A stretch of 64,000 nt of DNA from Monocercomonoides exilis PA203 (Eukaryota; Protista; Preaxostyla), in contig LSRY02000050.1 of assembly GCA_001643675.2 (NCBI GenBank), forward strand, positions 1 to 64,000, given 5' to 3'. Under the pieces are notes generated by a model. The model ran no database searches and had not been told where the DNA came from. It saw nothing but the letters and a program-made list of their open reading frames with translations. Shown piece after piece: positions 6,001 through 28,499 of the stretch (position 1 is its first letter; each line of letters begins with the position of its first letter). The position numbers were made by a program, and so were the translations under genes.

Positions 6001-9000
6001 TTTTTTTTTGCGGGGAGGGCGCGGGGAGGTGTGGCCTGCACAGCAGGCCACAGGAGCCAGGGGGCTATTTACACAAATTTTGTAATTTTTGTCGAAAAAG
6101 AAGTATTGAGAATAATTGGTGTTGAGTGATATTTCGGGTGAGAGGGCCTTCTCAGAGGGAAAAAGCCTTCCCACCCAAAAATATCAATGAAATATTTCTC
6201 AAAACTTCACCAAGTGATGTGACAATGCAAGAGAGTGTGATGGAGAGCGTTGCAAGGCGCTCCCCACTCGACGAGCCGGAAGGAACGCTGCGCGCTGCCC
6301 TAGGCCTTTTCCAGTCAATTTCCTTATTAACCGAATTTTCTTTGTTTTTTTTTTGCGGGGCGGGGAGGGCGCGGTAGTGTGGCCTGCAGGCCACAGGAGC
6401 CAGGGGGCTATTTACACAAATTTTGTAATTTTTGTCGAAAAAGAAGTATTGAGAATAATTGGTGTTGAGTGATATTTCGGGTGAGAGGGCCTTCTCAGAG
6501 GGAAAAGCCTTCCCACCCAAAAATATCAATGAAATATTTCTCAAACTTCACCAAGTGATGTGACAATGCAAGAGAGTGTGATGGGAGAGCGTTGCAAGGC
6601 GCTCCCCACTCTCGACGAGCCGGAAGGAACGCGCTGCGCGCTGCCCTAGGCCTTTTCCAGTCAATTTCCCTTATTAACCGAATTTTCTTTGTTTTTTTGC
6701 GGGGCGGGGAGGGCGCGGTGAGGTGTGGCCTGCACAGCAGGCCACAGAGCTCAGGGGGCTATTTACACAAATTTTGTAATTTTTGTCGAAAGAAGTATTG
6801 AGAATAATTGGTGTTGAGTGATATTTCGGGTGAGAGGGCCTTCTCAGAGGAAAAAGCCTTCCCACCCAAAAATATCAATGAAATATTTCTCAAAACTTCA
6901 CCAAGTGATGTGACAATGCAAGAGAGTGTGATGGGAGAGCGTTGCAAGGCGCTCCCCACTCGACGAGCCGGAAGGAACGCGCTGCGCGCTGCCCTAGGCC
7001 TTTTCCAGTCAATTTCCCTTATTAACCGAATTTTCTTTGTTTTTTTTGCGGGGCGGGGAGGGCGCGGTGAGTGGTGTGGCCTGCACAGCAGGCCACAGGA
7101 GCCAGGGGGCTATTTACACAAATTTTGTAATTTTTGTCGAAAAGAAGTATTGAGAATAATTGGTGTTGAGTGATATTTCGGGTGAGAGGGCCTTCTCAGA
7201 GGGAAAAGCCTTCCCACCCAAAAATATCAATGAAATATTTCTCAAAACTTCACCAAGTGATGTGACAATGCAAGAGAGTGTGATGGGAGAGCGTTGCAAG
7301 GCGCTCCCCACTCGACGAGCCGGAAGGAACGCGCTGCGCGCTGCCCTAGGCCAGTCAATTTCCCTTATTAACCGAATTTTCTTTGTTTTTTTGCGGGGCG
7401 GGGAGGGCGCGGTGGTGGTGTGGCCTGCTGCAGGCCACAGGAGCCAGGGGGCTATTTACACAAATTTTGTAATTTTTGTCGAAAAGAAGTATTGAGAATA
7501 ATTGGTGTTGAGTGATATTTCGGGTGAGAGGGCCTTCTCAGAGGAAAAGCCTTCCCACCCAAAAATATCAATGAAATATTTCTCAAAACTTCACCAAGTG
7601 ATGTGACAATGCAAGAGAGTGTGATGGGAGAGCGTTGCAAGGCGCTCCCCACTCTCGACGAGCCGGAAGGAACGCGCTGCGCGCTGCCCTAGGCCTTTTC
7701 CAGTCAATTTCCCTTATTAACCGAATTTTCTTTGTTTTTTTGCGGGGCGGGGAGGGCGCGGTGAGTGGTGTGGCCTGCTGTGTAGCAGGCCACAGACAGG
7801 GGGCTATTTACACAAATTTTGTAATTTTTGTCGAAAAGAAGTATTGAGAATAATTGGTGTTGAGTGATATTTCGGGTGAGAGGGCCTTCTCAGAGGGAAA
7901 AGCCTTCCCACCCAAAAATATCAATGAAATATTTCTCAAAACTTCACCAAGTGATGTGACAATGCAAGAGAGTGTGATGGGAGAGCGTTGCAAGGCGCTC
8001 CCCACTCTCGACGAGCCGGAAGGAACGCTGCGCGCTGCCCTAGGCCTTTTCCAGTCAATTTCCCTTATTAACCGAATTTTCTTTGTTTTTGCGGGGCGGG
8101 GAGGGCGCGGTGAGTGGTGTGGCCTGCACAGCAGGCCACAGGAGCCAGGGGGCTATTTACACAAATTTTGTAATTTTTGTCGAAAAGAAGTATTGAGAAT
8201 AATTGGTGTTGAGTGATATTTCGGGTGAGAGGGCCTTCTCAGAGGAAAAAGCCTTCCCACCCAAAAATATCAATGAAATATTTCTCAAAACTTCACCAAG
8301 TGATGTGACAATGCAAGAGAGTGTGATGGGAGAGCGTTGCAAGGCGCTCCCCACTCGACGAGCCGGAAGGAACGCGCTGCGCGCTGCCCTAGGCCTTTTC
8401 CAGTCAATTTCCCTTATTAACCGAATTTTCTTTGTTTTTTTTGCGGGGCGGGGAGGGCGCGGTGAGTGGTGTGGCCTGCTGTGCAGGCCACAGGAGCCAG
8501 GGGGCTATTTACACAAATTTTGTAATTTTTGTCGAAAAAGAAGTATTGAGAATAATTGGTGTTGAGTGATATTTCGGGTGAGAGGGCCTTCTCAGAGGAA
8601 AAAGCCTTCCCACCCAAAAATATCAATGAAATATTTCTCAAAACTTCACCAAGTGATGTGACAATGCAAGAGAGTGTGATGGGAGAGCGTTGCAAGGCGC
8701 TCCCCACTCTCGACGAGCCGGAAGGAACGCGCTGCGCGCTGCCCTAGGCCTTTTCCAGTCAATTTCCCTTATTAACCGAATTTTCTTTGTTTTTTTGCGG
8801 GGCGGGGAGGGCGCGGTGAGTGGTGTGGCCTGCTGTGCAGGCCACAGGAGCCAGGGGGCTATTTACACAAATTTTGTAATTTTTGTCGAAAAGAAGTATT
8901 GAGAATAATTGGTGTTGAGTGATATTTCGGGTGAGAGGGCCTTCTCAGAGGGAAAAAGCCTTCCCACCCAAAAATATCAATGAAATATTTCTCAAAACTT

Positions 9001-12000
9001 CACCAAGTGATGTGACAATGCAAGAGAGTGTGATGGGAGAGCGTTGCAAGGCGCTCCCCACTCCTCGACGAGCCGGAAGGAACGCGCTGCGCGCTGCCCT
9101 AGGCCTTTTCCAGTCAATTTCCCTTATTAACCGAATTTTCTTTGTTTTTTTTTTTTGCGGGGCGGGGAGGGCGCGGTGAGTGGTGTGGCCTGCTGTGCAG
9201 GCCACAGGAGCCAGGGGGCTATTTACACAAATTTTGTAATTTTTGTCGAAAAGAAGTATTGAGAATAATTGGTGTTGAGTGATATTTCGGGTGAGAGGGC
9301 CTTCTCAGAGGGAAAAAAGCCTTCCCACCCAAAAATATCAATGAAATATTTCTCAAAACTTCACCAAGTGATGTGACAATGCAAGAGAGTGTGATGGGAG
9401 AGCGTTGCAAGGCGCTCCCCACTCTCGACGAGCCGGAAGGAACGCGCTGCGCGCTGCCCTAGGCCTTTTCCAGTCAATTTCCTTATTAACCGAATTTTCT
9501 TTGTTTTTTTGCGGGGCGGGGAGGGCGCGGTGAGTGGTGTGGCCTGCTGTGCAGGCCACAGGAGCCAGGGGGCTATTTACACAAATTTTGTAATTTTTGT
9601 CGAAAAAGAAGTATTGAGAATAATTGGTGTTGAGTGATATTTCGGGTGAGAGGGCCTTCTCAGAGGGAAAAGCCTTCCCACCCAAAAATATCAATGAAAT
9701 ATTTCTCAAAACTTCACCAAGTGATGTGACAATGCAAGAGAGTGTGATGGGAGAGCGTTGCAAGGCGCTCCCCACTCGACGAGCCGGAAGGAACGCTGCG
9801 CGCTGCCCTAGGCCTTTTCCAGTCAATTTCCCTTATTAACCGAATTTTCTTTGTTTTTTGCGGGGCGGGGAGGGCGCGGTGAGTGGTGTGGCCTGCTGCA
9901 GGCCACAGGAGCCAGGGGGCTATTTACACAAATTTTGTAATTTTTGTCGAAAAAGAAGTATTGAGAATAATTGGTGTTGAGTGATATTTCGGGTGAGAGG
10001 GCCTTCTCAGAGGAAAAAGCCTTCCCACCCAAAAATATCAATGAAATATTTCTCAAAACTTCACCAAGTGATGTGACAATGCAAGAGAGTGTGATGGGAG
10101 AGCGTTGCAAGGCGCTCCCCACTCTCGACGAGCCGGAAGGAACGCGCTGCGCGCTGCCCTAGGCCTTTTCCAGTCAATTTCCCTTATTAACCGAATTTTC
10201 TTTGTTTTTTGCGGGGCGGGGAGGGCGCGGTGAGTGGTGTGGCCTGCTGTGCAGGCCACAGGAGCCAGGGGGCTATTTACACAAATTTTGTAATTTTTGT
10301 CGAAAAAGAAGTATTGAGAATAATTGGTGTTGAGTGATATTTCGGGTGAGAGGGCCTTCTCAGAGGAAAAAGCCTTCCCACCCAAAAATATCAATGAAAT
10401 ATTTCTCAAAACTTCACCAAGTGATGTGACAATGCAAGAGAGTGTGATGGGAGAGCGTTGCAAGGCGCTCCCCACTCTCGACGAGCCGGAAGGAACGCGC
10501 TGCGCGCTGCCCTAGGCCTTTTCCAGTCAATTTCCCTTATTAACCGAATTTTCTTTTGTTTTTTTTTTTTGCGCGGGAGGGGCGCGGTGAGTGGTGTGGC
10601 CTGCTGTGCAGGCCACAGGAGCCAGGGGGCTATTTACACAAATTTTGTAATTTTTGTCGAAAAAGAAGTATTGAGAATAATTGGTGTTGAGTGATATTTC
10701 GGGTGAGAGGGCCTTCTCAGAGGGAAAAGCCTTCCCACCCAAAAATATCAATGAAATATTTCTCAAAACTTCACCAAGTGATGTGACAATGCAAGAGAGT
10801 GTGATGGGAGAGCGTTGCAAGGCGCTCCCCACTCTCGACGAGCCGGAAGGAACGCTGCGCGCTGCCCTAGGCCTTTTCCAGTCAATTTCCCTTATTAACC
10901 GAATTTTCTTTGTTTTTTTTGCGGGGCGGGGAGGGCGCGGTGAGTGGTGTGGCCTGCTGTGCAGGCCACAGGAGCCAGGGGCTATTTACACAAATTTTGT
11001 AATTTTTGTCGAAAAGAAGTATTGAGAATAATTGGTGTTGAGTGATATTTCGGGTGAGAGGGCCTTCTCAGAGGGAAAAGCCTTCCCACCCAAAAATATC
11101 AATGAAATATTTCTCAAAACTTCACCAAGTGATGTGACAATGCAAGAGAGTGTGATGGGAGAGCGTTGCAAGGCGCTCCCACTCTCGACGAGCCGGAAGG
11201 AACGCGCTGCGCGCTGCCCTAGGCCTTTTCCAGTCAATTTCCCTTATTAACCGAATTTTCTTTGTTTTTTTGCGGGGCGGGGAGGGCGCGGTGAGTGGTG
11301 TGGCCTGCTGTGCAGGCCACAGGAGCCAGGGGGCTATTTACACAAATTTTGTAATTTTTGTCGAAAAAGAAGTATTGAGAATAATTGGTGTTGAGTGATA
11401 TTTCGGGTGAGAGGGCCTTCTCAGAGGGAAAAAGCCTTCCCACCCAAAAATATCAATGAAATATTTCTCAAAACTTCACCAAGTGATGTGACAATGCAAG
11501 AGAGTGTGATGGGAGAGCGTTGCAAGGCGCTCCCCACTCTCGACGAGCCGGAAGGAACGCGCTGCGCGCTGCCCTAGGCCTTTTCCAGTCAATTTCCCTT
11601 ATTAACCGAATTTTCTTTGTTTTTTTGCGGGGCGGGGAGGGCGCGGTGAGTGGTGTGGCCTGCTGTGCAGGCCACAGGAGCTCAGGGGGCTATTTACACA
11701 AATTTTGTAATTTTTGTCGAAAAAGAAGTATTGAGAATAATTGGTGTTGAGTGATATTTCGGGTGAGAGGGCCTTCTCAGAGGGAAAAGCCTTCCCACCC
11801 AAAAATATCAATGAAATATTTCTCAAAACTTCACCAAGTGATGTGACAATGCAAGAGAGTGTGATGGGAGAGCGTTGCAAGGCGCTCCCCACTCTCGACG
11901 AGCCGGAAGGAACGCGCTGCGCGCTGCCCTAGGCCTTTTCCAGTCAATTTCCCTTATTAACCGAATTTTCTTTGTTTTTTGCGGGGCGGGGAGGGCGCGG

Positions 12001-15000
12001 TGAGTGGTGTGGCCTGCTGTGCAGGCCACAGGAGCTCAGGGGGCTATTTACACAAATTTTGTAATTTTTGTCGAAAAGAAGTATTGAGAATAATTGGTGT
12101 TGAGTGATATTTCGGGTGAGAGGGCCTTCTCAGAGGAAAAAGCCTTCCCACCCAAAAATATCAATGAAATATTTCTCAAAACTTCACCAAGTGATGTGAC
12201 AATGCAAGAGAGTGTGATGGGAGAGCGTTGCAAGGCGCTCCCCACTCTCGACGAGCCGGAAGGAACGCTGCGCGCTGCCCTAGGCCTTTTCCAGTCAATT
12301 TCCCTTATTAACCGAATTTTCTTTGTTTTTTTTGCGGGGCGGGGAGGGCGCGGTGAGTGGTGTGGCCTGCTGTGCAGGCCACAGGAGCCAGGGGGCTATT
12401 TACACAAATTTTGTAATTTTTGTCGAAAAAGAAGTATTGAGAATAATTGGTGTTGAGTGATATTTCGGGTGAGAGGGCCTTCTCAGAGGGAAAAAGCCTT
12501 CCCACCCAAAAATATCAATGAAATATTTCTCAAAACTTCACCAAGTGATGTGACAATGCAAGAGAGTGTGATGGGAGAGCGTTGCAAGGCGCTCCCCACT
12601 CTCGACGAGCCGGAAGGAACGCGCTGCGCGCTGCCCTAGGCCTTTTCCAGTCAATTTCCTTATTAACCGAATTTTCTTTGTTTTTTTGCGGGGCGGGGAG
12701 GGCGCGGTGAGTGGTGTGGCCTGCTGTGCAGGCCACAGGAGCTCAGGGGGCTATTTACACAAATTTTGTAATTTTTGTCGAAAAAGAAGTATTGAGAATA
12801 ATTGGTGTTGAGTGATATTTCGGGTGAGAGGGCCTTCTCAGAGGGAAAAGCCTTCCCACCCAAAAATATCAATGAAATATTTCTCAAAACTTCACCAAGT
12901 GATGTGACAATGCAAGAGAGTGTGATGGGAGAGCGTTGCAAGGCGCTCCCCACTCTCGACGAGCCGGAAGGAACGCGCTGCGCGCTGCCCTAGGCCTTTT
13001 CCAGTCAATTTCCCTTATTAACCGAATTTTCTTTGTTTTTTTTTTTTGCGGGGCGGGGAGGGCGCGGTGAGTGGTGTGGCCTGCTGTGCAGGCCACAGGA
13101 GCTCAGGGGGCTATTTACACAAATTTTGTAATTTTTGTCGAAAAAGAAGTATTGAGAATAATTGGTGTTGAGTGATATTTCGGGTGAGAGGGCCTTCTCA
13201 GAGGGAAAAGCCTTCCCACCCAAAAATATCAATGAAATATTTCTCAAAACTTCACCAAGTGATGTGACAATGCAAGAGAGTGTGATGGGAGAGCGTTGCA
13301 AGGCGCTCCCCACTCTCGACGAGCCGGAAGGAACGCGCTGCGCGCTGCCCTAGGCCTTTTCCAGTCAATTTCCCTTATTAACCGAATTTTCTTTGTTTTT
13401 TTGCGGGGCGGGGAGGGCGCGGTGAGTGGTGTGGCCTGCTGCAGGCCACAGGAGCTCAGGGGGCTATTTACACAAATTTTGTAATTTTTGTCGAAAAAGA
13501 AGTATTGAGAATAATTGGTGTTGAGTGATATTTCGGGTGAGAGGGCCTTCTCAGAGGGAAAAAGCCTTCCCACCCAAAAATATCAATGAAATATTTCTCA
13601 AAACTTCACCAAGTGATGTGACAATGCAAGAGAGTGTGATGGGAGAGCGTTGCAAGGCGCTCCCCACTCTCGACGAGCCGGAAGGAACGCGCTGCGCGCT
13701 GCCCTAGGCCTTTTCCAGTCAATTTCCCTTATTAACCGAATTTTCTTTGTTTTTTTGCGGGGCGGGGAGGGCGCGGTGAGTGGTGTGGCCTGCTGTGCAG
13801 GCCACAGGAGCCAGGGGGCTATTTACACAAATTTTGTAATTTTTGTCGAAAAGAAGTATTGAGAATAATTGGTGTTGAGTGATATTTCGGGTGAGAGGGC
13901 CTTCTCAGAGGGAAAAGCCTTCCCACCCAAAAATATCAATGAAATATTTCTCAAAACTTCACCAAGTGATGTGACAATGCAAGAGAGTGTGATGGGAGAG
14001 CGTTGCAAGGCGCTCCCCACTCTCGACGAGCCGGAAGGAACGCGCTGCGCGCTGCCCTAGGCCTTTTCCAGTCAATTTCCCTTATTAACCGAATTTTCTT
14101 TGTTTTTTTGCGGGGCGGGGAGGGCGCGGTGAGTGGTGTGGCCTGCTGTGCAGGCCACAGGAGCTCAGGGGCTATTTACACAAATTTTGTAATTTTTGTC
14201 GAAAAAGAAGTATTGAGAATAATTGGTGTTGAGTGATATTTCGGGTGAGAGGGCCTTCTCAGAGGGAAAAAGCCTTCCCACCCAAAAATATCAATGAAAT
14301 ATTTCTCAAAACTTCACCAAGTGATGTGACAATGCAAGAGAGTGTGATGGGAGAGCGTTGCAAGGCGCTCCCCACTCTCGACGAGCCGGAAGGAACGCGC
14401 TGCGCGCTGCCCTAGGCCTTTTCCAGTCAATTTCCCTTATTAACCGAATTTTCTTTGTTTTTTTTTGCGGGGCGGGGAGGGCGCGGTGAGTGGTGTGGCC
14501 TGCTGTGCAGGCCACAGGAGCCAGGGGGCTATTTACACAAATTTTGTAATTTTTGTCGAAAAGAAGTATTGAGAATAATTGGTGTTGAGTGATATTTCGG
14601 GTGAGAGGGCCTTCTCAGAGGGAAAAGCCTTCCCACCCAAAAATATCAATGAAATATTTCTCAAAACTTCACCAAGTGATGTGACAATGCAAGAGAGTGT
14701 GATGGGAGAGCGTTGCAAGGCGCTCCCCACTCTCGACGAGCCGGAAGGAACGCGCTGCGCGCTGCCCTAGGCCTTTTCCAGTCAATTTCCCTTATTAACC
14801 GAATTTTCTTTGTTTTTTTGCGGGGCGGGGAGGGCGCGGTGAGTGGTGTGGCCTGCTGTGCAGGCCACAGGAGCTCAGGGGCTATTTACACAAATTTTGT
14901 AATTTTTGTCGAAAAAGAAGTATTGAGAATAATTGGTGTTGAGTGATATTTCGGGTGAGAGGGCCTTCTCAGAGGGAAAAAGCCTTCCCACCCAAAAATA

Positions 15001-17972
15001 TCAATGAAATATTTCTCAAAACTTCACCAAGTGATGTGACAATGCAAGAGAGTGTGATGGGAGAGCGTTGCAAGGCGCTCCCCACTCTCGACGAGCCGGA
15101 AGGAACGCGCTGCGCGCTGCCCTAGGCCTTTTCCAGTCAATTTCCCTTATTAACCGAATTTTCTTTGTTTTTTTGCGGGGCGGGGAGGGCGCGGTGAGTG
15201 GTGTGGCCTGCTGTGCAGGCCACAGGAGCTCAGGGGGCTATTTACACAAATTTTGTAATTTTTGTCGAAAAAGAAGTATTGAGAATAATTGGTGTTGAGT
15301 GATATTTCGGGTGAGAGGGCCTTCTCAGAGGGAAAAAAGCCTTCCCACCCAAAAATATCAATGAAATATTTCTCAAAACTTCACCAAGTGATGTGACAAT
15401 GCAAGAGAGTGTGATGGGAGAGCGTTGCAAGGCGCTCCCCACTCTCGACGAGCCGGAAGGAACGCGCTGCGCGCTGCCCTAGGCCTTTTCCAGTCAATTT
15501 CCCTTATTAACCGAATTTTCTTTTGTTTTTTTTTTTTTGCGGGGCGGGGAGGGCGCGGTGAGTGGTGTGGCCTGCTGTGCAGGCCACAGGAGCCAGGGGG
15601 CTATTTACACAAATTTTGTAATTTTTGTCGAAAAAGAAGTATTGAGAATAATTGGTGTTGAGTGATATTTCGGGTGAGAGGGCCTTCTCAGAGGGAAAAA
15701 GCCTTCCCACCCAAAAATATCAATGAAATATTTCTCAAAACTTCACCAAGTGATGTGACAATGCAAGAGAGTGTGATGGGAGAGCGTTGCAAGGCGCTCC
15801 CCACTCTCGACGAGCCGGAAGGAACGCGCTGCGCGCTGCCCTAGGCCTTTTCCAGTCAATTTCCCTTATTAACCGAATTTTCTTTGTTTTTTTTTTTTGC
15901 GGGGCGGGGAGGGCGCGGTGAGTGGTGTGGCCTGCTGTGCAGGCCACAGGAGCTCAGGGGGCTATTTACACAAATTTTGTAATTTTTGTCGAAAAAGAAG
16001 TATTGAGAATAATTGGTGTTGAGTGATATTTCGGGTGAGAGGGCCTTCTCAGAGGGAAAAAGCCTTCCCACCCAAAAATATCAATGAAATATTTCTCAAA
16101 ACTTCACCAAGTGATGTGACAATGCAAGAGAGTGTGATGGGAGAGCGTTGCAAGGCGCTCCCCACTCTCGACGAGCCGGAAGGAACGCGCTGCGCGCTGC
16201 CCTAGGCCTTTTCCAGTCAATTTCCCTTATTAACCGAATTTTCTTTGTTTTTTTTTTTGCGGGGCGGGGAGGGCGCGGTGAGTGGTGTGGCCTGCTGTGC
16301 AGGCCACAGGAGCTCAGGGGGCTATTTACACAAATTTTGTAATTTTTGTCGAAAAAGAAGTATTGAGAATAATTGGTGTTGAGTGATATTTCGGGTGAGA
16401 GGGCCTTCTCAGAGGGAAAAAGCCTTCCCACCCAAAAATATCAATGAAATATTTCTCAAAACTTCACCAAGTGATGTGACAATGCAAGAGAGTGTGATGG
16501 GAGAGCGTTGCAAGGCGCTCCCCACTCTCGACGAGCCGGAAGGAACGCGCTGCGCGCTGCCCTAGGCCTTTTCCAGTCAATTTCCCTTATTAACCGAATT
16601 TTCTTTGTTTTTTTTTTTGCGGGGCGGGGAGGGCGCGGTGAGTGGTGTGGCCTGCTGTGCAGGCCACAGGAGCCAGGGGGCTATTTACACAAATTTTGTA
16701 ATTTTTGTCGAAAAGAAGTATTGAGAATAATTGGTGTTGAGTGATATTTCGGGTGAGAGGGCCTTCTCAGAGGGAAAAAGCCTTCCCACCCAAAAATATC
16801 AATGAAATATTTCTCAAAACTTCACCAAGTGATGTGACAATGCAAGAGAGTGTGATGGGAGAGCGTTGCAAGGCGCTCCCCACTCTCGACGAGCCGGAAG
16901 GAACGCGCTGCGCGCTGCCCTAGGCCTTTTCCAGTCAATTTCCCTTATTAACCGAATTTTCTTTGTTTTTTTTTGCGGGGCGGGGAGGGCGCGGTGAGTG
17001 GTGTGGCCTGCTGTGCAGGCCACAGGAGCTCAGGGGGCTATTTACACAAATTTTGTAATTTTTGTCGAAAAAGAAGTATTGAGAATAATTGGTGTTGAGT
17101 GATATTTCGGGTGAGAGGGCCTTCTCAGAGGGAAAAAGCCTTCCCACCCAAAAATATCAATGAAATATTTCTCAAAACTTCACCAAGTGATGTGACAATG
17201 CAAGAGAGTGTGATGGGAGAGCGTTGCAAGGCGCTCCCCACTCTCGACGAGCCGGAAGGAACGCGCTGCGCGCTGCCCTAGGCCTTTTCCAGTCAATTTC
17301 CCTTATTAACCGAATTTTCTTTGTTTTTTTTTTTGCGGGGGCGGGGAGGGCGCGGTGAGTGGTGTGGCCTGCTGTGCAGGCCACAGGAGCCAGGGGGCTA
17401 TTTACACAAATTTTGTAATTTTTGTCGAAAAAGAAGTATTGAGAATAATTGGTGTTGAGTGATATTTCGGGTGAGAGGGCCTTCTCAGAGGGAAAAAGCC
17501 TTCCCACCCAAAAATATCAATGAAATATTTCTCAAAACTTCACCAAGTGATGTGACAATGCAAGAGAGTGTGATGGGAGAGCGTTGCAAGGCGCTCCCCA
17601 CTCTCGACGAGCCGGAAGGAACGCTGCGCGCTGCCCTAGGCCTTTTCCAGTCAATTTCCCTTATTAACCGAATTTTCTTTGTTTTTTTTTTTTGCGGGGC
17701 GGGGAGGGCGCGGTGAGTGGTGTGGCCTGCTGTGCAGGCCACAGGAGCCAGGGGGCTATTTACACAAATTTTGTAATTTTTGTCGAAAAAGAAGTATTGA
17801 GAATAATTGGTGTTGAGTGATATTTCGGGTGAGAGGGCCTTCTCAGAGGGAAAAAGCCTTCCCACCCAAAAATATCAATGAAATATTTCTCAAAACTTCA
17901 CCAAGTGATGTGACAATGCAAGAGAGTGTGATGGGAGAGCGTTGCAAGGCGCTCCCCACTCTCGACGAGCCG
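1..17972. repeat. Head-to-tail tandem array (complex satellite), ~355-bp unit, ~51 full copies plus a partial last copy; it starts at base 1 and may continue left of the window
   Basis: The marker TCCCACCCAAAAATATCAATG recurs at about 1, 344, 686 ... 17142, 17502, 17860 (52 occurrences counted by eye). The period is ~335-350 bp on the left and ~353-360 bp on the right. Differences are mostly homopolymer indels. Identity with the unit stops after ...CTCGACGAGCCG at ~17972. Confidence 0.98.
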
Positions 17973-18060
17973 AAGTCACGTCGCTTCGCACAAAATGCTC
18001 GCTTCGCTCGCATTTCGTGCTCGCTCCTTAGACTTTTGCTCGTCGAGCTTAGGGGAGCGC
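17949..18060 (-). other. Long fold-back hairpin at the array/unique-sequence junction
   Basis: Nested inverted repeats: GCGCTCCCC/GGGGAGCGC, CTCGACGAGC/GCTCGTCGAG and AAGTC/GACTT. On the minus strand the core reads GCACGAAATGC-GA-GC-GAA-GC-GA-GCATTTTGTGC. Confidence 0.9.
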
Positions 18061-20778
18061 TATTATTTTTTTTTTTTTTTAATTTTTAAATTTTTATTTT
18101 ATCATTTTGCATCGAATGTATTTATTTTATATTTTTTTGAAAATTATCAAAAATACCATATTATAATTTTATGTAATATAGCATTTGCAAAAACTATGAA
18201 ACGAATTGATTTTGAGTGATACATCCTCAACATTCGTTAACAAATCATTCTTACGTCTTGTTTCATGTATGTGCTGTTTTCTTTACATTTATTTTTCCGT
18301 TCTGATATGTTGCACATTTTGTGATAGATTTCTTGACTAGCTGTTTGTATTTCGTGCAATCATCGTAATATTCATTACAAATCTTTTACAGACAAAAGAT
18401 CTTCATCACTAAATTTTATTCTTCATCCGATTTCATTCCATCATAACAATTCGCAATAATTGTGACATTATTTTTTCAGATCTCAATGAATGCAACAAAT
18501 CAAGAGAAATCTTAAAGAAAATATTTTATCGTTCATTCAATAATTGTTTTTCAAACCTTTATGCAACAAACAACAAGTATCTCTTCTAGTCCTTTGTTTT
18601 CCGAAAGTTCGTAAGCAATTTCATGATAATTTGAGAAATACTACATTTCATTTTATATCACTCTCAATAAAAAGTCAAAAAAATTATCAAATAAATTGAA
18701 TATTTTTATTTTTTATTAAATATTGATGTCAAACCTTGATTTCATTAAAACTTCAAATAAAACTAGACTGAATTCAAGTAATCATAATGACATTAATCAA
18801 TGAACTTCAATGAAAATGTATATTCTTATTATTATCAACAGTTTATCTTGTTGATAATGAAAATCATCGATGATGTCCTTTCAATTAACGTAATGTCCTT
18901 CTTGATTTCATTTCAAGCTCATTCCAGCCAATTCTTTTCTTCCACAACAGATCCGAATAATATCATCAATTGTTTTTCACAACGAATTTGTGCCAATGCG
19001 TTGAGAAAAAATGTCGACTGTCATTCATGTTTCATATTCGATCAAACTTCATTTCATGAAAATTTTTTCTTTAGTGGATTTTCCTTTATCAGCATTTTTC
19101 CATCTTTGCATCTTGTTCCAGCTTAACAAATTACTTTTTTCTTTTTGCGCTATCTTCGTTCATCTTTTAACTTCATCACAGCTATTTCGTTTGCTCAAAA
19201 CATAAATTCTTTCTTTTAATGTCATTAATCAATGAAAATATAAACATTTATAAAATAACTTTCGCTAACAATGCACACACTTTTTATATCATCTAATGTT
19301 TGAATGACTGCTTGACAAAATTCTGATTTGTTTGAAAAAAACTTGCTGTATCAAATTATGATCACAATGAATACCATACAAAAAAATATATAGAACAAAA
19401 CATTCAATAACAATTTATTTATCGAAATCAGCAAAGTGAAATAAAAATGAAACGCAAAATCCTTATTTTGTTTGAAAATTATTCTTCAATTATGTTAAAA
19501 TCTGTAATAGTGCAGTCTGATTCACATATTTTTTGTCTCATTTATTTTGTATTTTGTTCTGCTTTCTTCCTCATGCAAATATCGAACATCTCTATTCAAT
19601 AGAGTGAATGCAAAGATTTATCCATGCGCACTGTTGAGAATTACCTTTGAAACAGAGATTATTTGAAAAAACCAAACCAAGTTATGTGTTCAAACAGAAT
19701 TGAAAGAAACTGATTCTGATTCAAAACTTTTGCTATTCGTTGTGCTTTGTTATTTGGTATTTGGATGCATCGTGAAATATCTTTTCTGCATTCAGATTGA
19801 ATGAAGATGCTCCAACAAAATGATTAAAGAAAGCAATCATTCACATTTCACATGATTCAAATGAATTTTCCAATTTCATCATTCAGCAGTTTTTGGTGAA
19901 ATAGTACTTTGCCCATTTTTGTGTTATCATGAATAACTTTTCTTTAACTAAAACAATTCAATTTTGCTTTTGTTTTCTCGTTAGAATAATCGATAACAAC
20001 ATGATCTTCCAAAAACCAATTCATTATTCTTTGTACTTGATGATTGTTTCATTCGACTTTCTTTAATTCCTCTTGTTCAGATGACAAAGAAATTAATTAT
20101 CATCGCCATTTTCAACGATCGAACGGAGACAAAAAACAAATCTTTCTAAGAACATTTCTCGAATCGCCATTTGTTTCTTTTGCAAAACAAATGAATAACA
20201 AAAACTCTTGATAAACTCAATTTCTGAAAAATGTTGCAATGCATTTGATTGTGAATATATCTCATTTAAAGAAGAAACGATGATGAATGACTTGAATGAA
20301 CTCATTGATATTTAATGATCAACCATCACAATTCATTTGTTTGTGATCATCGTATTCGTTCATTAAATATGCGTTTCATGGATTCCTATTCTAATTAGCT
20401 TTCATTGTGCTGTCTGCAACCTCCTTCCATCATTGAGAATGTTCACCAGGCTTAAAACGTCAACAACAAGTTTGCTTTTGTTTTCCTACTCAAATCTAAT
20501 TAAATTATCCTTCATTTGTTGCAACATTTATCTCAGTCCACATATATAATCTTTTGTCACAGAAAGATTGGTGTTTTTAATGTTGCAAAACACGAAAAAT
20601 TAAAAACTCAATTTAAAACATTTCACGCTTTTATTAAAACCTCTCTTTTTATCGGAATGTTTGTGTATGAATTAATAAAAAACAATTGTACTGATTGAAT
20701 ATGAAAAAAAGATAATGAGAATATAAACAAACAGTAAGCGCCCTGTGGAAATGAACTTCCAAACAATAATAAAGAGTG

Positions 20779-23155
20779 TCAATTCTTCTCTCCTCCTTTC
20801 TCTTTCTCAGGTGCAGAGTTCAAGTTTCCCAATTGTGGATGATCCGTCTTAAATTGTTCATATTTTGTCATGGATTTTGAATAGTCACTCATTGATCTAT
20901 CTTTCGTGATGTGTCGTATTCTATCTCTGCAAGAGTTTGCAGTTCTTTCGAATAATTGCTGACTTGCAGTTTTGAAATCTCCAGACTGCAAAAAACTTTT
21001 CATCAGTATCCGATCTTCTTCTGCTGTCCATCTGCGTCTTGATTTTGTTCCAAGTATCTTGTTGATGGGTCTATTCTCTCTAAGTGGAACTTTTTCTTTT
21101 GGTCTATGAAATTTGAGTTTCGTGCTTCCATTCAAATACTCTTGTATTCCTGCTAAATATAAACGTACTGCTTCCACAACATTTTTATTCTTCTTCAGTT
21201 TCTGTAATAAATCGATTCTAGCTTGCTTCATGAATGTGTTTCCCTTTTCACACTTAACATTATGATTATTCAAATACGATGAAGCAGCCAACCGATTCAA
21301 TCGGATTACGCAATTATATGGATAAAAGAACTCACTGCACGTGGCTTTTATTATTTCGAGAACATAAAAGTCAAATGCAAGTATAATTGATTCCTCCTTC
21401 CAAATTGGCTCATTTAATTTGATGTTGTGATATATTGCAGGACTTGTTAAAGTCATATCATAGTAATCATCGGATTCAATTGCTTCATCCTGGAATCCAA
21501 GCCTATTACCAATTATTACAGCCTTCTCAGTCTCTTTCACATATTCCCACTGGGATTTTTGAAATGAAGGCCCAATTACCTACAAAAGCTGTCGCCTCAA
21601 GCACCTGTTTCCTTTTTCCTGGTTTTCCCCTGCTTTTAGCAAAGCTGAGCAAATAAAACCCGACCTAAAGGAATGAAAGCCAAACAGGTTATCAGGATAA
21701 CCTGCTTGGACAGCTCTTTTTCAGTCGAACTCTCATTGCACCCTTTCTAAGTTGCCAGATAAATTGCTCCTCCAACTCCTTAAGCTCCCATTTGTCAAAA
21801 TTGGTTAGGGAGAGTCCAAACTCCTCCACCAAATACTGCTCCAGCCACCATATTACGTTAAGTTGATGCTTTTCGTTAATTGCTCCTTCCACCGTAACAC
21901 AGTGATTGTCACCATTCCACCCTTTCCCACACTCAAGATTAAACGTAACTTTGATAAAATTTGAGTTGGGAGGAGAGTAAACTCGGATGATATCCTTCAA
22001 TCTTATATGAGCACATGTTTGTGCTCTCGCTCCCGTTGAAAGAGCAAACAAGAACAAGGAAGCCTCTTGGGGCTTCTCAACTATCCAGTCGGGATAGCAT
22101 TCTAAAATACGTTGCAAATCTGATACGATGAGAGGCTGTTTTTTCCATTTATTTTCATTCTCCTCTCTCATTTTTGGCAAAGGCAATCCTTTCTTCTTTC
22201 TTTTTCTGATCCATGTTTTGATTTCCATTAATGCTCGATGAACTTTCATTCTGACTTTATCCTTCACAGGTTTTCCAGTTTTTGTCTCAGATATATTGAA
22301 AAGAGATGATCGAATGCCATTCTTTATTGTTTCAACAGAATAACCGACTGCAGTTCCAAGCAACTTCATAAATCCATACACAGGTTTTGCCTTCAATGGG
22401 AAAGGTTCCTTCTTTGCCATTTTGCAATAATCAATGAACATTCCACAAACCCATTTGTGTGTTTTAACAGTTTCGTCACAGAATGGTAAACCCTTCTCCA
22501 CATATGGTTGTAACTCTTCTCTTGAATAGGATCTCAACATATCTGAAAACTTTGTAGGAGAATCATAAGCATATCTTTGTGTTGTCAATGCAGGGTTTGT
22601 TGAAGGTGATGAAGAATTGTCTGGAAGAATATCTAACATTGTTGCATTAATATTTCCATATAAGTCTTTGAAATCAAGAGCGAATGCATCTTTTGATTCA
22701 AATGAAACTTTTTCAGATATCGCCTTTTCCTTTTTCTCCAATTCATCCAATTTTTCAGAAATAATTGACAAATTCTTATCATTGACAAGAACTGAGACCT
22801 TTCTTCTTTTGGATGATTGCATTGCGGACCAAATTGAAGATTTTCTATCTTTGTGCCTAATTTTTGAAGGATGGCAATCACAATATTGAAAATCACAATT
22901 TGTTTCTGTTGATTCGGAATCTTTCATTTCATCATCGTCTGTGTTTTCTTTTGTTGATAGAGAAGATGAAAACTCTTCATAGCATGAATTGGCATTTTCC
23001 ATGTCTGTTTGGCAATCATAAGTGTTATCATCTGTATCAGTTTGAGAATCTTCAAAAGATGACTTTATAAGAGAAGGAAGTTTTTTCATAAAATCAATCT
23101 TTGATTTCCTTTGAGTTGTGCTGCAGTCGACTTCAAAGCATTCATTATCTTCCAA
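20779..23155 (-). CDS. Tyrosine recombinase with C-terminal Myb/SANT domain (YR-Myb copy 1); three frameshifts in A-runs, so either sequencing errors or a young pseudogene
   Basis: ORF 23155-21692 has EASLFLFALSTGARAQT (catalytic R) and GKG. Frame-hopping through 21720-21541 gives AGYPDNLFGFHSFRSGFICSALLKAG..KQVLEATAFVGNW..WEYVKE (HxxR, W, Y), which joins ORF 21540-20779. That ORF ends with the Myb repeat RRRWTAEEDRILMKSFLQSGDFKTASQQLFERTANSCRDRIRHI. It is colinear with the 25178-26920 protein. Confidence 0.88.
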
Positions 23156-23204
23156 CGAAATATTTTCTTCGTTTTGACTGTCAGGTTTTGTCTTTAAATT
23201 TTCT

Positions 23205-24314
23205 TCAAGAATTTTCTCTCTTTTTCGCTCTTCTTTTCAATTTTATTCGAAATAAACTCGGTTCCATCTTCTTCCATGAATATTCTTTCAAAAGTGTCAC
23301 AACAAATGTTGCTCGTTGAAATCGAACAAGATGCAGAAGCCGAAGCTGAATTTCTTTGATTGCATATCGATTCTGTAAATGGATTTTCTGAGATTTCTGA
23401 GAAAACATTATCTTTTTCTTTTTTTGAAAAGTTAAAGAATGAGATTAACTTAGATTTAAACGCAAACCATTTTCTGAGGAATTTGATTTCTTTTCTGAAT
23501 ATTTCGCTCTTCTGTGTTTTCTTTTTTTATTGCTTGTTCTTTTCTTCTCATTCTGCTCATGTGCAGTTTGAGAAGATGGGTGCGATTTCTTCAAATTGAA
23601 TTCCTGTTTTTCCTCTGCCTTATTCTGTTTCGCGTTTGTGCAAGTATCGTCTGAAGATTCCATGTGTTCCAAACATTTCTTGTCCAAATTTTCTTTTCGG
23701 GATATAAAAAGAGGTCTCGGATATGGAGATTTATGTTGATAATCTCGAAGGTGATCTAATGAAGGTTGTGGTGAAAGATTTTTTAACAGCGTTGAATAAT
23801 AATCCACAGAAGGAATTTCATCTTCTTTCATGAAATTTAGAAGCCAGTTTGAAATTGAATCTGAATAAGGCTTTTTCTCTATTTCTTTTTCATTGGACAC
23901 TGCTTCTTCTTTTTCTTGATCATGTTGTTTTTTATAAGCCAACCTTGGGCAATAAAACATTGGTGTCGAAATTACAGATTCGTATTCTTGTGTAGTTGAA
24001 GCCAGATGCAATGGAGAGCTCGGACAAGGAATTGAAGAAGAAGATGAAGGAGAAAATGGAGGTGAAAAAGAGTGAGAATATGATGATCGCGGTGATGGAG
24101 AATGAGAAGGAGAATGATGAAAATAAACTGGAGAGAATGGCGGAGGAGAAAAAAAACCAGGTTGTGAAGGGGAAAGAATTGCATCGGATGTTGTTTCATC
24201 ACTTTCATCGCTGTCGCTGCTGTCATCTTCCGAAGAAAATGTTTCTTTCTGAATTTTCCTGATTTTTTCTATTATTGAAGTTGATAATAAAATTAATATT
24301 ATAATTTTAAACAT
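23205..24314 (-). CDS. Ser/Pro- and charge-rich low-complexity coding segment; possibly upstream exons of YR-Myb copy 1 or a separate accessory gene
   Basis: ORFs 24314-23445 and 23408-23205 lie on the same strand directly upstream of the YR ORF. Candidate GT..AG introns are near 24330-24270 and 23448-23400. No recognisable domain. Confidence 0.4.
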
Positions 24315-25126
24315 TAAATCAAATACAAACTTCCGATTTTTGTATTCTTATGACTGTAATCCAGAAGCAATTCAGAATTAGTTTACAAATCATTAGAATA
24401 TGAAGTGCATACGTATTAATGCGATAGGCTTGAAAGCTTTGCATTCAAATTGTTTGCTCAGTAATAAAAAATATTCTTTTCTTTATTAATATTTTTGATC
24501 AAATCACAATATTCATATTTTTTGTGAACAATTAGAAAATTTTAATATTGAAATCATGCAAATAATTATTCGCTATAAAGTTATTTATTATAGTCAATTG
24601 GAATTATCTTCCAAGTCAGTTTTTCAGAGCAAAGAAAAAGTTCATAAGTTCAAAATAATTGTTCATTGTTGTTTATAGACTTTTTAATTGAAAAAAGAAC
24701 CTGCCAAACAGCTATAAAATTTATACAAATCAGATGATTCTGTTGAATTGAAATGTTAAAAGGCTCACTGTTAATGGATATCAATAACTTTGCTTTTATT
24801 TTCAATTTTCATATGCATATAAGAAAAAGAAACAATCAATAGTCAATAATGTTTTTTATTAAAAACGACTTCACACCCGCTTAAAACACTGAAACACTGA
24901 TATTGATAAGTGTACGTAAACCAGTCAATTAAAACCTTTTCTGTTGAAAAAATTTAAATACATTATGATCAAACTTTATTATAAAAATGATATTTAAAAA
25001 ATCATAAATCTCTCTATGATTTGTATTTTACTCCAAATATACCGGTTCAAAAAATGAGCAAATTTTGTTAATCAATATTTTGCTACGATCTGGATCGTCA
25101 GATCAAAAATTTAATCAAAAAAAACG

Positions 25127-25140
25127 TAACCCTAACCTAA
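25127..25140. promoter_or_regulatory. Telomere-like motif TAACCCTAACCTAA just upstream of YR-Myb copy 2
   Basis: The sequence is directly visible. A second CCTAACCCTAAC lies at ~28488-28499. Function is inferred only. Confidence 0.35.
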
Positions 25141-25177
25141 ATACAAGGACCAGTCTGCAGCACTTGAAGAACAAAAT

Positions 25178-26920
25178 GTGTCATTGGATAGAAAAAGAAC
25201 AAAGCCAACATTTTTGGAAAATGCATTGAACGTGGTCAGCAAAAACAGAATATTGAAATATTTTGATGAGCCACGTCACTATTCCAATTCAACTTTAAAA
25301 AAACACACTTGGGTTTTTCGTTTGTACAATTCATTTGCTCAATGTTTCGATTTTTTACCATTTCCTATGAATAAAAAATGTATAAGAGGATTTTTACGTT
25401 TTTTAGGACATGATTGTAAATACTGCATTTTTTCTATTGAGTGTGTTATTGTTCCATCTTTGAAACGAATTCAACAAAGAATGTTTAACGAATCAATTGA
25501 CAAAGATTTGGACAGTGAAATCAATGGAATAGTCAGAGAACTTAAAATGAACAAATCTTTGAAGCAAAGAGGTGAAGGAAAGCAACCTCTTGTAACTTTC
25601 GATATGAGTTACTTAATTGACAGCATTCCTGACTATTTCGCTGACAAAGCTTCAGAGGCATCTTTGTTTTTATTCTCTCTTCATACAGGAGCAAGAGCAG
25701 TGACATGTGGAGGTGTAAGATTATGTGATATCAGAAAAGTCATAATTCAAGATGATGATTCGATATTTGTCAAAATCAGACTTATGAGAAACAAAGGAAA
25801 TGTGAACTGGAATCATGTAATAACGTTGGAAAATCAAAAAGCTGACAACAAATCATTGGATGCAGTTTATTGGCTCAGACAACACATACAATCTCAATTC
25901 AACATGGATTTGTTTGAACCGTCTTTATGGCCAGTCGAAGAGAAAGATGAAAGAGTATTATGGAAGTGGGACACTGAAAACATGAGAACAAGATTGAAAC
26001 AAAGACTTGAAATGGCAGGCTTTCCACCAGCATTGTTTGGATTTCATTCTCTCAGATCAGGATTTCTGTGTTCAGCTGTTATAAAAGCAGGATCAGATAT
26101 CAAACAAAGACAAGCAGTCTTGGAAACTTGTGCATTTGTGGCAGGCTGGATTCCATTCTCGCATGCTGAAATGGTTTATGTGAAAAAAGCTTGCGTTCAA
26201 ACAATAATTGCATCAAGAGTGATCATGCTCAACAAAGATAATGAGAAACAATCAGTGATGGACAACAGATTATTAACAATTGAGGATTTTCATGGAATAA
26301 CTCTCAGAAAGAACAAATGGAATAGTGAAATCATTTTTGCATCATTCTCAAGAATCATTTTGGATCAATTGAAAAAGGATAGAGTTGGAGTCAAAAATAC
26401 ACCTGATTCAAATAAATATATATTGCAACTTGGGTTGAATAAATATGTTGAAACAAATGAAGAGTTGGAGGAGCTGGCAAAAGTCAAATATGATCCATTG
26501 ATTCTTAAATCAACACCTCAATTTTTCTGTGGAATTCGAATAAACGCAAGAGCTGAAGTTGCAAGAAAGGATATCATCAAAATATTGCTGAGAGATCCAA
26601 AAATATTGAAACAGCAAGCTGAAACATTCATTGCATTCATGAAAGAACAAGAAATTTGGTTGAAGGAGGTGAAAACATACAAGCACAGAGTTGAAAAAGT
26701 TAGTACAACAAACAAGATACTTGAAACAAGAGAAAAGGATGAAAAAGGAAATAGAAAGAGAATCAAGTGGACTGAAGAAGAAGATAAAACATTGAAATTT
26801 CATAAAGAAAGAAATGAAACTTGGGTTCAAATATCAAAACATTTAACAGGAAGAACTCCTGGTGATTGCTCAGATAGATGGAGAAACTTGAAAAAGAAAT
26901 TAGAAAGAGAAAAAAAGTGA
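25178..26920 (+). CDS. Tyrosine recombinase with C-terminal Myb/SANT domain (YR-Myb copy 2), uninterrupted; exact start uncertain
   Basis: 580-aa ORF with EASLFLFSLHTGARAVT (R), NKG (K), FGFHSLRSGFLCSA (HxxR), VAGW (W) and MVYVKK (Y). The C-terminus RIKWTEEEDKTLKFHKERNETWVQISKHLTGRTPGDCSDRWRNLKKK is a three-Trp Myb repeat. Confidence 0.93.
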   Translation: MSLDRKRTKPTFLENALNVVSKNRILKYFDEPRHYSNSTLKKHTWVFRLYNSFAQCFDFLPFPMNKKCIRGFLRFLGHDCKYCIFSIECVIVPSLKRIQQRMFNESIDKDLDSEINGIVRELKMNKSLKQRGEGKQPLVTFDMSYLIDSIPDYFADKASEASLFLFSLHTGARAVTCGGVRLCDIRKVIIQDDDSIFVKIRLMRNKGNVNWNHVITLENQKADNKSLDAVYWLRQHIQSQFNMDLFEPSLWPVEEKDERVLWKWDTENMRTRLKQRLEMAGFPPALFGFHSLRSGFLCSAVIKAGSDIKQRQAVLETCAFVAGWIPFSHAEMVYVKKACVQTIIASRVIMLNKDNEKQSVMDNRLLTIEDFHGITLRKNKWNSEIIFASFSRIILDQLKKDRVGVKNTPDSNKYILQLGLNKYVETNEELEELAKVKYDPLILKSTPQFFCGIRINARAEVARKDIIKILLRDPKILKQQAETFIAFMKEQEIWLKEVKTYKHRVEKVSTTNKILETREKDEKGNRKRIKWTEEEDKTLKFHKERNETWVQISKHLTGRTPGDCSDRWRNLKKKLEREKK

Positions 26921-28331: not shown

Positions 28332-28499
28332 ATATTGCATGGGTTGGCAGGTTATTCAAGGTTAACTCCAATTTGTGAGGGTTAACTCATTGACCAAGGT
28401 TGTTTTCAGCCAACCAACAAAAAATCGTAAAAATCATGTGCCAACCATTACAATATTAAAATTTCCAAGGCTTTTTTAGTTGAATTGCCTAACCCTAAC
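28332..28499. promoter_or_regulatory. Cluster of GGTT/AACC motifs, mostly within an imperfect inverted repeat
   Basis: GGTT at 28342, 28350, 28360, 28380 and 28398; AACC at 28412, 28443 and 28491. ATATTGCATGGGTTGGCA pairs with TGCCAACCATTACAATAT (15/18). GGTTAACTC occurs twice. Confidence 0.55.

Follow-up and report, generated by a model that had tools for sequence, protein, structure and literature searches.

Subtelomeres of green algae are composed of tandem arrays (Sultan, Subrin, Subrecs and Subrel) with a common 'Spacer' behind them (Chaux-Jukic et al. 2021, PMC8287924), which raises the question of what sets the inner edge of arrays of this type. We analyze here the inner edge of a 353-bp satellite array at a chromosome end of Monocercomonoides exilis PA203, in a stretch of 64,000 nucleotides (the window) that forms the beginning of contig LSRY02000050.1, here named C48 (assembly of 82.3 Mb in 101 contigs). 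The array stops at position 17972, inside a 114-nt imperfect palindrome made of the end of its own last unit and an inverted copy of that end in the flanking DNA. A second satellite of this genome stops in a similarly built palindrome, and the same rare mini-hairpin motif, GCGAAGC, accompanies both boundaries, an arrangement for which we found no earlier description. The genome papers of M. exilis, which report an Oxford Nanopore Technologies (ONT) assembly of 82 Mb with 101 contigs and 85 contig ends carrying TTAGGG telomeres, contain no description of these satellites (PMC8767320, PMC6759080).

The heptamer d(GCGAAGC) is known to form a mini-hairpin of unusual stability. Polymerase pausing has been documented at mini-hairpins of this type, and motifs of this kind are found in the origins of single-stranded DNA (ssDNA) phages (PMC13037366). 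The exceptional stability invoked for it by a first-pass annotation, made from the letters of this DNA alone, is therefore borne out by the literature. Spacer inversion, arm homogenization and arm extension, in turn, are known products of polymerase template switching at inverted repeats (PMC8604942). The explanation that we favor, tentatively and with slightly less than an even chance of being right, is that a hairpin-prone boundary seeded the tandem amplification and grew by template switching, the block being copied afterwards between chromosome ends. The two boundaries offer a concrete, testable link between DNA hairpins and the birth and limits of tandem arrays at chromosome ends.

The inner edge of the 353-bp array

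Tandem Repeats Finder reported a single array at positions 1-17972, (period 353, 51.3 copies, 95% matches). The array is 48% GC, the remainder of the window about 30%. The final letters of the array are ...GACGAGCCG at 17972 or, in a longer form, ...CTCGACGAGCCG (17972). The elements on the two sides of this edge are the following:

1..17972, plus strand: 353-bp telomere-associated satellite array (Tandem Repeats Finder), truncated on the left where the contig begins
17949..17972: left outer arm of the palindrome (GCGCTCCCC-ACT-CTCGACGAGC-CG), the end of the last, truncated unit, present in every unit
17973..18037: junction-specific core, with a 5-bp stem (17973-17977 / 18031-18035) and an 11-bp stem (17988-17998 / 18010-18020)
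18038..18062: right outer arm (GCTCGTCGAG-CTTA-GGGGAGCGC), an inverted copy of the unit end
18063..18170: AT-rich rest of the common spacer; 18066-18080 is a T-run, and the motif AAATTATCAAAAATACC, near 18141-18157, is semi-conserved

Positions 17949-18062 thus form the imperfect 114-nt palindrome, in which the left outer arm belongs to the last unit and the right arm to the flank. Two pairs of reverse complements build the outer part, GCGCTCCCC (17949-17957) with GGGGAGCGC (18052-18060) and CTCGACGAGC (17961-17970) with GCTCGTCGAG (18038-18047), so the fold-back between array and flank that had been proposed from the letters was indeed recovered. Words of the left arm occur in 29-47 copies within the array, and this arm varies with the array subfamily; words of the right arm have zero occurrences there. 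The 90 nt at 17973-18062 are absent from the array, and their similarity to the rest of the unit by local alignment is at the level of shuffled sequence, which rules out the junction as a diverged unit remnant. The array boundary, 17972/17973, is the exact foot of the inner hairpin, whose 11-nt centre (17999-18009) lies between the 11-bp arms (10/11 paired). Immediately 3' of the hairpin the sequence reads TATTA(G/T)TTT, and no duplication flanking 17949-18062 was detected in the window.

The palindrome folds into 9 + 10 + 5-6 + 11 bp. With DNA parameters, the minimum free energy of a 131-nt stretch is -33.0 kcal/mol on the plus strand and -37.2 kcal/mol on the minus strand (z = -5.3 on both), and 0/200 shuffles folded as well. 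Under the nearest-neighbour model, the inner 66-nt hairpin by itself shows no significant stability (z -0.6 / -1.9); what makes the modelled fold significant is that the unit-derived arm pairs with the flank. A search of the whole window against Rfam gave zero hits at the gathering threshold, and at an E-value threshold only sub-threshold matches, to RUF6-5 and, within the unit, to microRNA models. The RUF6-5 match, at 17950-18084, is weak and probably generic: this Plasmodium RNA consists of a hairpin and a T-tract, and the match scores 25 bits (E 0.027) where the gathering threshold is 70.

The 114-nt junction has eight copies in the genome, each close to a contig end and always with the array outward (C48, C49, C86, C19, C7, C64, C5 and C9). 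A genome search showed that all eight arrays stop not at random positions but at one base, reading GAGCCG before the boundary and AAGTC after it. A 17-nt boundary word occurs at these eight junctions only, besides one chance-level match with two mismatches. The flanks fall into four types, shared by C48/C49, by C86/C19/C7 and by C64/C5, and some of the eight contig ends may be redundant haplotigs. A scan of metagenomes with a 22-nt junction word returned one match, in a coding region of an unrelated, repeat-free contig, which we took as chance. As mean pairwise values between the four end types, identities along the block are:

90 junction-specific bases: 96.7%
last unit: 84%, a mosaic of blocks at ~100% and blocks at ~65%
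first 100 nt of the AT-rich flank: 67%
flank past ~18170: ~36%, that is, unrelated

The block common to the ends consists therefore of the array, the palindrome and ~110 nt of flank, the palindrome and the AT-rich stretch together making a spacer of ~200 nt. The earlier suggestion that the hairpin is an element terminus does not agree with this, since homology between ends runs ~110 nt beyond it.

The two arms of the palindrome behave differently across the copies. The right arm is constant save for one deletion (C7) and one substitution (C9). In the left arm, CTCGACGAGC is replaced by CTCTCCGAGC in 5/8 copies, which creates two adjacent uncompensated mismatches in the outer stem while the right arm is unchanged; the CTCTCCGAGC variant is carried by all units of those five arrays, and the fold drops to z -2.5 to -4.4. 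The left arm thus drifts with array homogenization and the right arm stays fixed. Among the six distinct copies we counted zero compensatory changes: of the 37 pairs, 33 are invariant and 4 are broken in some copies, and each change touching a pair breaks that pair. The covariation that had been looked for in the stems was therefore not found, and neither was an attC-like conservation of the fold-back through compensatory change, for which only the recurrence of the shape in a second satellite speaks. These alignments do not support a selected single-strand DNA structure.

The apex of the hairpin on the minus strand was seen as the first-pass annotation had drawn it, an 11-bp stem with one G.T, followed by GA/GA and by GC-GAA-GC. 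GCGAAGC lies on this strand at 17983-17989 and at 18001-18007 (18 nt apart). The apex copy (18001-18007) is intact in 5/8 junctions and mutated in C64, C5 and C9; the other (17983-17989) is intact in 8/8. The heptamer occurs 6 times in 163 kb of subtelomeric loci, two of these being the two junction types, and 6 times in the window (4.9 expected).

The second satellite, with a unit of 347-348 bp, adjoins the telomere at C34, at C92 and at the right end of C25; most of the other chromosome ends examined have unique or recombinase sequence right beside the telomere. The array of the second satellite stops in a 96-nt palindrome, composed of the 48 nt that complete its final unit (GCTTTTTTCCCCGCCCTCACACCTAATTTTTGAA), a short centre and an inverted copy in the flank (...GCGTTTCAAAAATTTTTCGTGTTCGGGGCGGAAAAAAGC), at these positions:

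C34:11774-11879 (L037:2775-2880): second-satellite junction palindrome
C92 (L038:1610-1715): second-satellite junction palindrome

This palindrome has three copies in the genome; at C34 and C92 it folds at -27.8 to -34.8 kcal/mol (z -5.4 to -7.4), with a geometry of 14-11-14 or 17-7-17. Between C34 and C92, the left arm differs by a unit-wide T against A (T.T against A.T in the stem) and the right arm is constant. GCTTCGC, which is GCGAAGC on the minus strand, directly follows the palindrome, so that the heptamer is on the same strand at the junctions of both satellites. The two satellites cannot be aligned, and their palindrome cores have no common sequence. They have only one motif in common, a T-run and then G(C/T)GGGGCGG(A)GGAGG, with a local score of 36, where 200 shuffles reached 31 at most; it lies at 17683-17720 of the window and at L037:2514-2545. 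Each unit of both satellites ends in a T-run, preceded by a hairpin in the second, and the junction lies downstream of the common motif, by 278 nt in the 353-bp satellite and by ~290 nt in the 347-bp one. On these sequences, the two satellites may have a common origin or separate ones.

Hairpins of this array also carry marks of past mutation. A unit palindrome, GGCCTGC-NNN-GCAGGCC (one per unit, window 557-17740), has TGT as its loop in a proximal block of 26 units and the inverted ACA in a distal block of 12; such an inversion, apparently spread later in blocks, is typical of template switching. C31 contains, ~19 kb from the contig end, another stretch of C48-type flank with ~100% identity over 2.6 kb. 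Of the palindrome it has kept just the right third, and this is joined to telomere repeats:

18029..18029: window position matching the healed break in the C31 copy, where (CCCTAA)13 is joined straight to TAGACTTTTGCTCGTCGAG... (C31:1055554-1055587 plus ~80 nt distal, minus strand)

The sequence of this joint indicates that a chromosome end of this type broke inside the palindrome, was healed by a telomere and was later buried.

Telomere-side sequences and neighbouring genes

At the start of C19, C9 and C49, (CCCTAA)n runs straight into the 353-bp array. Because these repeats cap the arrays, the 353-bp array is a subtelomeric, telomere-associated satellite and does not replace the telomere. 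The order at these ends is (CCCTAA)n, the array, the 114-nt palindrome and ~110 nt of AT-rich DNA. A conserved word of the unit has 444 matches in the genome, consistent with eight arrays, and one subfamily word is found only in C7, C19 and C86. The satellite is present at only 8 of the ~85 assembled chromosome ends.

On the telomere side, the edge of the array is ragged, the inner edge being fixed: at the start of C9 (L012:2395-2520) the most distal units are mixed with telomere repeats, and in C19 the telomere meets the array within a unit, at CCAGGAGC. AACCTAG(TT) forms the innermost telomere-side letters at many chromosome ends (L020, L023, L025, L026, L028 and L031), and CAAACTAGG is a candidate, unconfirmed, for an odd telomere unit copied from the telomerase RNA. 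A single TTAGGG is also present in the bulge of the right arm (18049-18054), inverted with respect to the terminal telomere and kept in 8/8 copies, where the left arm opposite reads CCCCACT.

Further into the window, we noted the following features:

20779..26920: two divergent tyrosine-recombinase (YR)-like/Myb genes, with minus-strand open reading frame pieces at 20779-24314 and a plus-strand gene at 25178-26920
28487..28498, plus strand: buried telomere seed GCCTAACCCTAA, 12 nt, in the same orientation as the terminal telomere

The array, the palindrome and the two recombinase-Myb genes are all distal to this seed. Pfam gave Myb matches in both genes, with the Myb domain C-terminal and resembling TRF-type Myb domains, and a PDB profile search of the family matched the Myb domain alone. 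The assignment as recombinases is putative and rests on invariant residues, the family alignment keeping R173, K206, H290, R293, W324 and Y334. At least 77 members of the family are present in the genome, most of them no more than 20 kb from a contig end, and chromosome ends of M. exilis are indeed crowded with such recombinase-like elements. The closest paralogues of the two genes (55% identity) adjoin the second satellite.

Explanations for the fixed boundary

In the explanation that we favor, the palindrome would be a hairpin-prone DNA site that both seeded and bounded a tandem amplification. On the strand running 5' to 3' toward the telomere, a hairpin with GCGAAGC mini-hairpins would stall DNA synthesis at its base; forks moving outward would use this strand as their lagging-strand template, and end resection would leave it single-stranded. 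Re-alignment of the nascent strand upstream would then duplicate ~350 bp, intrastrand template switching would make or lengthen the inverted arm, and unequal exchange would enlarge the array. The whole block would later be copied among chromosome ends via recombination. The right arm would thus be a fossil of the ancestral unit end, and the hairpin would set the end of the array as a mutational cause, not as a dedicated recombination or origin signal.

Several observations lead us to this proposal. The boundary base is the same at 8/8 ends, neither the boundary 17-mer nor the arrays occur elsewhere, and the edge lies at the foot of the inner hairpin (17972/17973). In both satellites, the left arm drifts uncompensated and the right arm is fixed, and the 347-bp satellite ends in a palindrome of similar construction. 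The rare GCGAAGC, a motif of the kind known to pause polymerases, sits on the same strand at both junction types. Finally, the TGT/ACA loop inversion in the unit palindrome and the copy that appears to have broken and been telomere-healed inside the junction palindrome both point to mutational activity at these hairpins. Under seeding, the recurrence in two satellites would be explained without selection for pairing.

Other points weigh against this explanation. The 90-base junction (96.7%) is far better kept than the adjacent AT-rich 100 nt (67%), and a sequence-specific function may be involved; the conservation of the junction, loops included, suggests purifying selection or biased conversion, with a function possible on top of the history, and seeding alone leaves it unexplained. 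In the second satellite, the boundary is 4 bp inside the stem and not at its foot. An intermediate or single-copy ancestral locus was not found, the slippage step is one that we infer and did not observe, and the evidence comes from two satellite families and one healed break. The connection between template-switch events and the seeding of a satellite is, likewise, drawn by this analysis.

Among the alternatives, we regard a transcription signal at the array edge as rather unlikely. The palindrome would act as a hairpin-plus-T-run terminator, as a promoter like that of the Chlamydomonas Spacer, or as the source of a silencing hairpin RNA matching every unit. The hairpin is directly followed by a T-run or T-rich DNA in all copies, units of both satellites end in a T-run and then show the common G-rich motif, and green-algal spacers at the equivalent position are promoters (PMC8287924). 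The likeness to RUF6-5 could be counted in the same direction, but its 25 bits are far under the threshold of 70. No downstream gene is common to all ends, the flanks being unrelated after ~18170, and a silencing trigger is at odds with a right arm that fails to track the left arm of its own array at 5/8 ends.

We also hold it rather unlikely that the GCGAAGC-bearing palindromes on the G-strand are functional modules of oxymonad chromosome ends that delimit subtelomeric satellites by acting on ssDNA, either as a YR-Myb recombination site or as a programmed stop, break or healing point in resection or replication, their shape being kept across two satellites of unrelated sequence. The idea of the first-pass annotation, a fold-back that is a functional ssDNA signal fixing where the array ends, is partly supported. 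It is helped by the fixed boundary base, by the conserved junction and by the second satellite with the same geometry and heptamer; it is weakened by the lack of covariation, by the outer-stem mismatches in 5/8 copies and by the apex mutated in 3/8. If functional, the palindrome would be a new kind of chromosome-end cis-element.

Taken specifically as a recombination site (a lox/FRT-like duplex or an attC-like folded strand) for the neighbouring YR/Myb proteins, the palindrome would let exchange swap or homogenize array blocks, and we find this quite unlikely. YR-like genes with R-K-H-R-W-Y lie 2.4-7 kb from every junction, two inverted 11-bp arms surround the 11-nt centre (14-11-14 in the second satellite), the junction is conserved while the flanks differ, and the TTAGGG in the right arm could be set beside a Myb domain of TRF-type likeness. 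Nothing, however, links the site to these proteins: the genes are found at most chromosome ends, nearly all of which lack the palindrome, and the role of recombination substrate proposed in the first-pass annotation was accordingly not upheld. The cores of the two satellites have no sequence in common, homology between ends reaches 110 nt past the palindrome, and the stems do not covary. In lox/FRT-type sites, two inverted arms of about 11-14 bp typically surround an asymmetric spacer of 6-8 bp, a size that the 11-nt centre exceeds; the palindrome of the second satellite can be read as 14-11-14 or as 17-7-17.

An ssDNA signal of the G-strand for replication or end processing, such as a priming site, a fork barrier, a protective fold-back or a programmed site of breakage and healing, appears improbable. 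The strand that would be single-stranded after resection or in lagging-strand synthesis has the more stable fold and all the GCGAAGC copies, mini-hairpins do occur in phage ssDNA origins (PMC13037366), and one break with telomere healing lies inside the palindrome. This healed break is a single case, the apex mini-hairpin is mutated in 3/8 copies and most chromosome ends have no such element.

That the fold-back is an assembly artefact, a chimera or a misjoin, has a next to negligible probability: some contig ends that share flanks may be redundant haplotigs, but the junction recurs on 8 contigs, next to 4 different flanks and with left arms that are specific to the subfamily, which argues strongly against it, a truncated copy exists inside C31, and a chimeric read would yield a long palindrome and not 24-nt arms.

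Comparison with described systems

Several known elements were considered and rejected as descriptions of this junction. A Helitron 3' end, where homology would stop at a CTRR terminus 10-12 nt after a short hairpin, does not fit, the hairpin being followed here by TATTA(G/T)TTT and homology continuing for ~110 nt. A MITE (miniature inverted-repeat transposable element) or fold-back transposon, expected to be dispersed and to have target-site duplications, was rejected because there are only 8 copies and 1 truncated copy, all at or derived from array ends, with no flanking duplication. A resolution site of hairpin telomeres, where the resolution point would lie at the centre of a perfect palindrome, is excluded by the imperfect palindrome, with its asymmetric 11-nt centre and bulges.

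Chironomus-type telomeres consist of complex repeats of 340-350 bp. The M. exilis arrays are similar to them in unit length and in that different ends carry different unit subfamilies; a complex-repeat telomere is ruled out here by the (CCCTAA)n/(TTAGGG)n that caps the arrays.

Like integron attC and lox/FRT sites, the junction is an imperfect palindrome near tyrosine-recombinase-like genes, and its shape recurs in the second satellite with unrelated sequence. Those sites differ from the junction in that here there are no cassettes and no extrahelical bases conserved across the families, the centre is 11 nt long and the genes are also found without the site. An attC-like site bounding cassettes was rejected for the same reasons, namely the absence of cassettes and the recombinase genes at most ends without the site.

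With the origins of ssDNA phages (PMC13037366), the junction has the exact heptamer in common, here flanked by GA/GA at the apex and on the strand expected to be single-stranded. The present case differs in belonging to a eukaryotic chromosome and in having lost the apex copy in 3/8 junctions, and the formation of the mini-hairpin in vivo is only predicted. Products of template-switch mutagenesis at inverted repeats (PMC8604942, PMC8794818) are similar in the short inverted copy beside its source, in the inversion of a 3-nt loop and in a fitting arm size, the difference being that the palindrome described here coincides with the end of a 17-46 kb array, and does so twice.

The closest likeness in layout is with the subtelomeres of green algae (PMC8287924). 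There, as in M. exilis, the array lies next to the telomere and always faces the same way, and its unit nearest the centromere breaks off at one fixed position at every end. The subtelomeres also have in common a non-repetitive spacer, highly conserved where it starts beside the array, and arrays are more alike within than between ends. In Coccomyxa, one truncated spacer even abuts telomere repeats, as the C31 copy does here. The M. exilis ends thus have what defines a subtelomeric satellite with a shared spacer, a telomere-adjoining array in one orientation, a proximal unit truncated at the same position and a shared non-repetitive spacer. They differ from the algal ends in having no sequence relation to them and in carrying the satellite at only 8 of ~85 ends. 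The text of the algal study contains neither 'hairpin' nor 'palindrom', and what the M. exilis ends add to the algal layout is an array boundary inside a unit-versus-flank palindrome, seen in two satellites.

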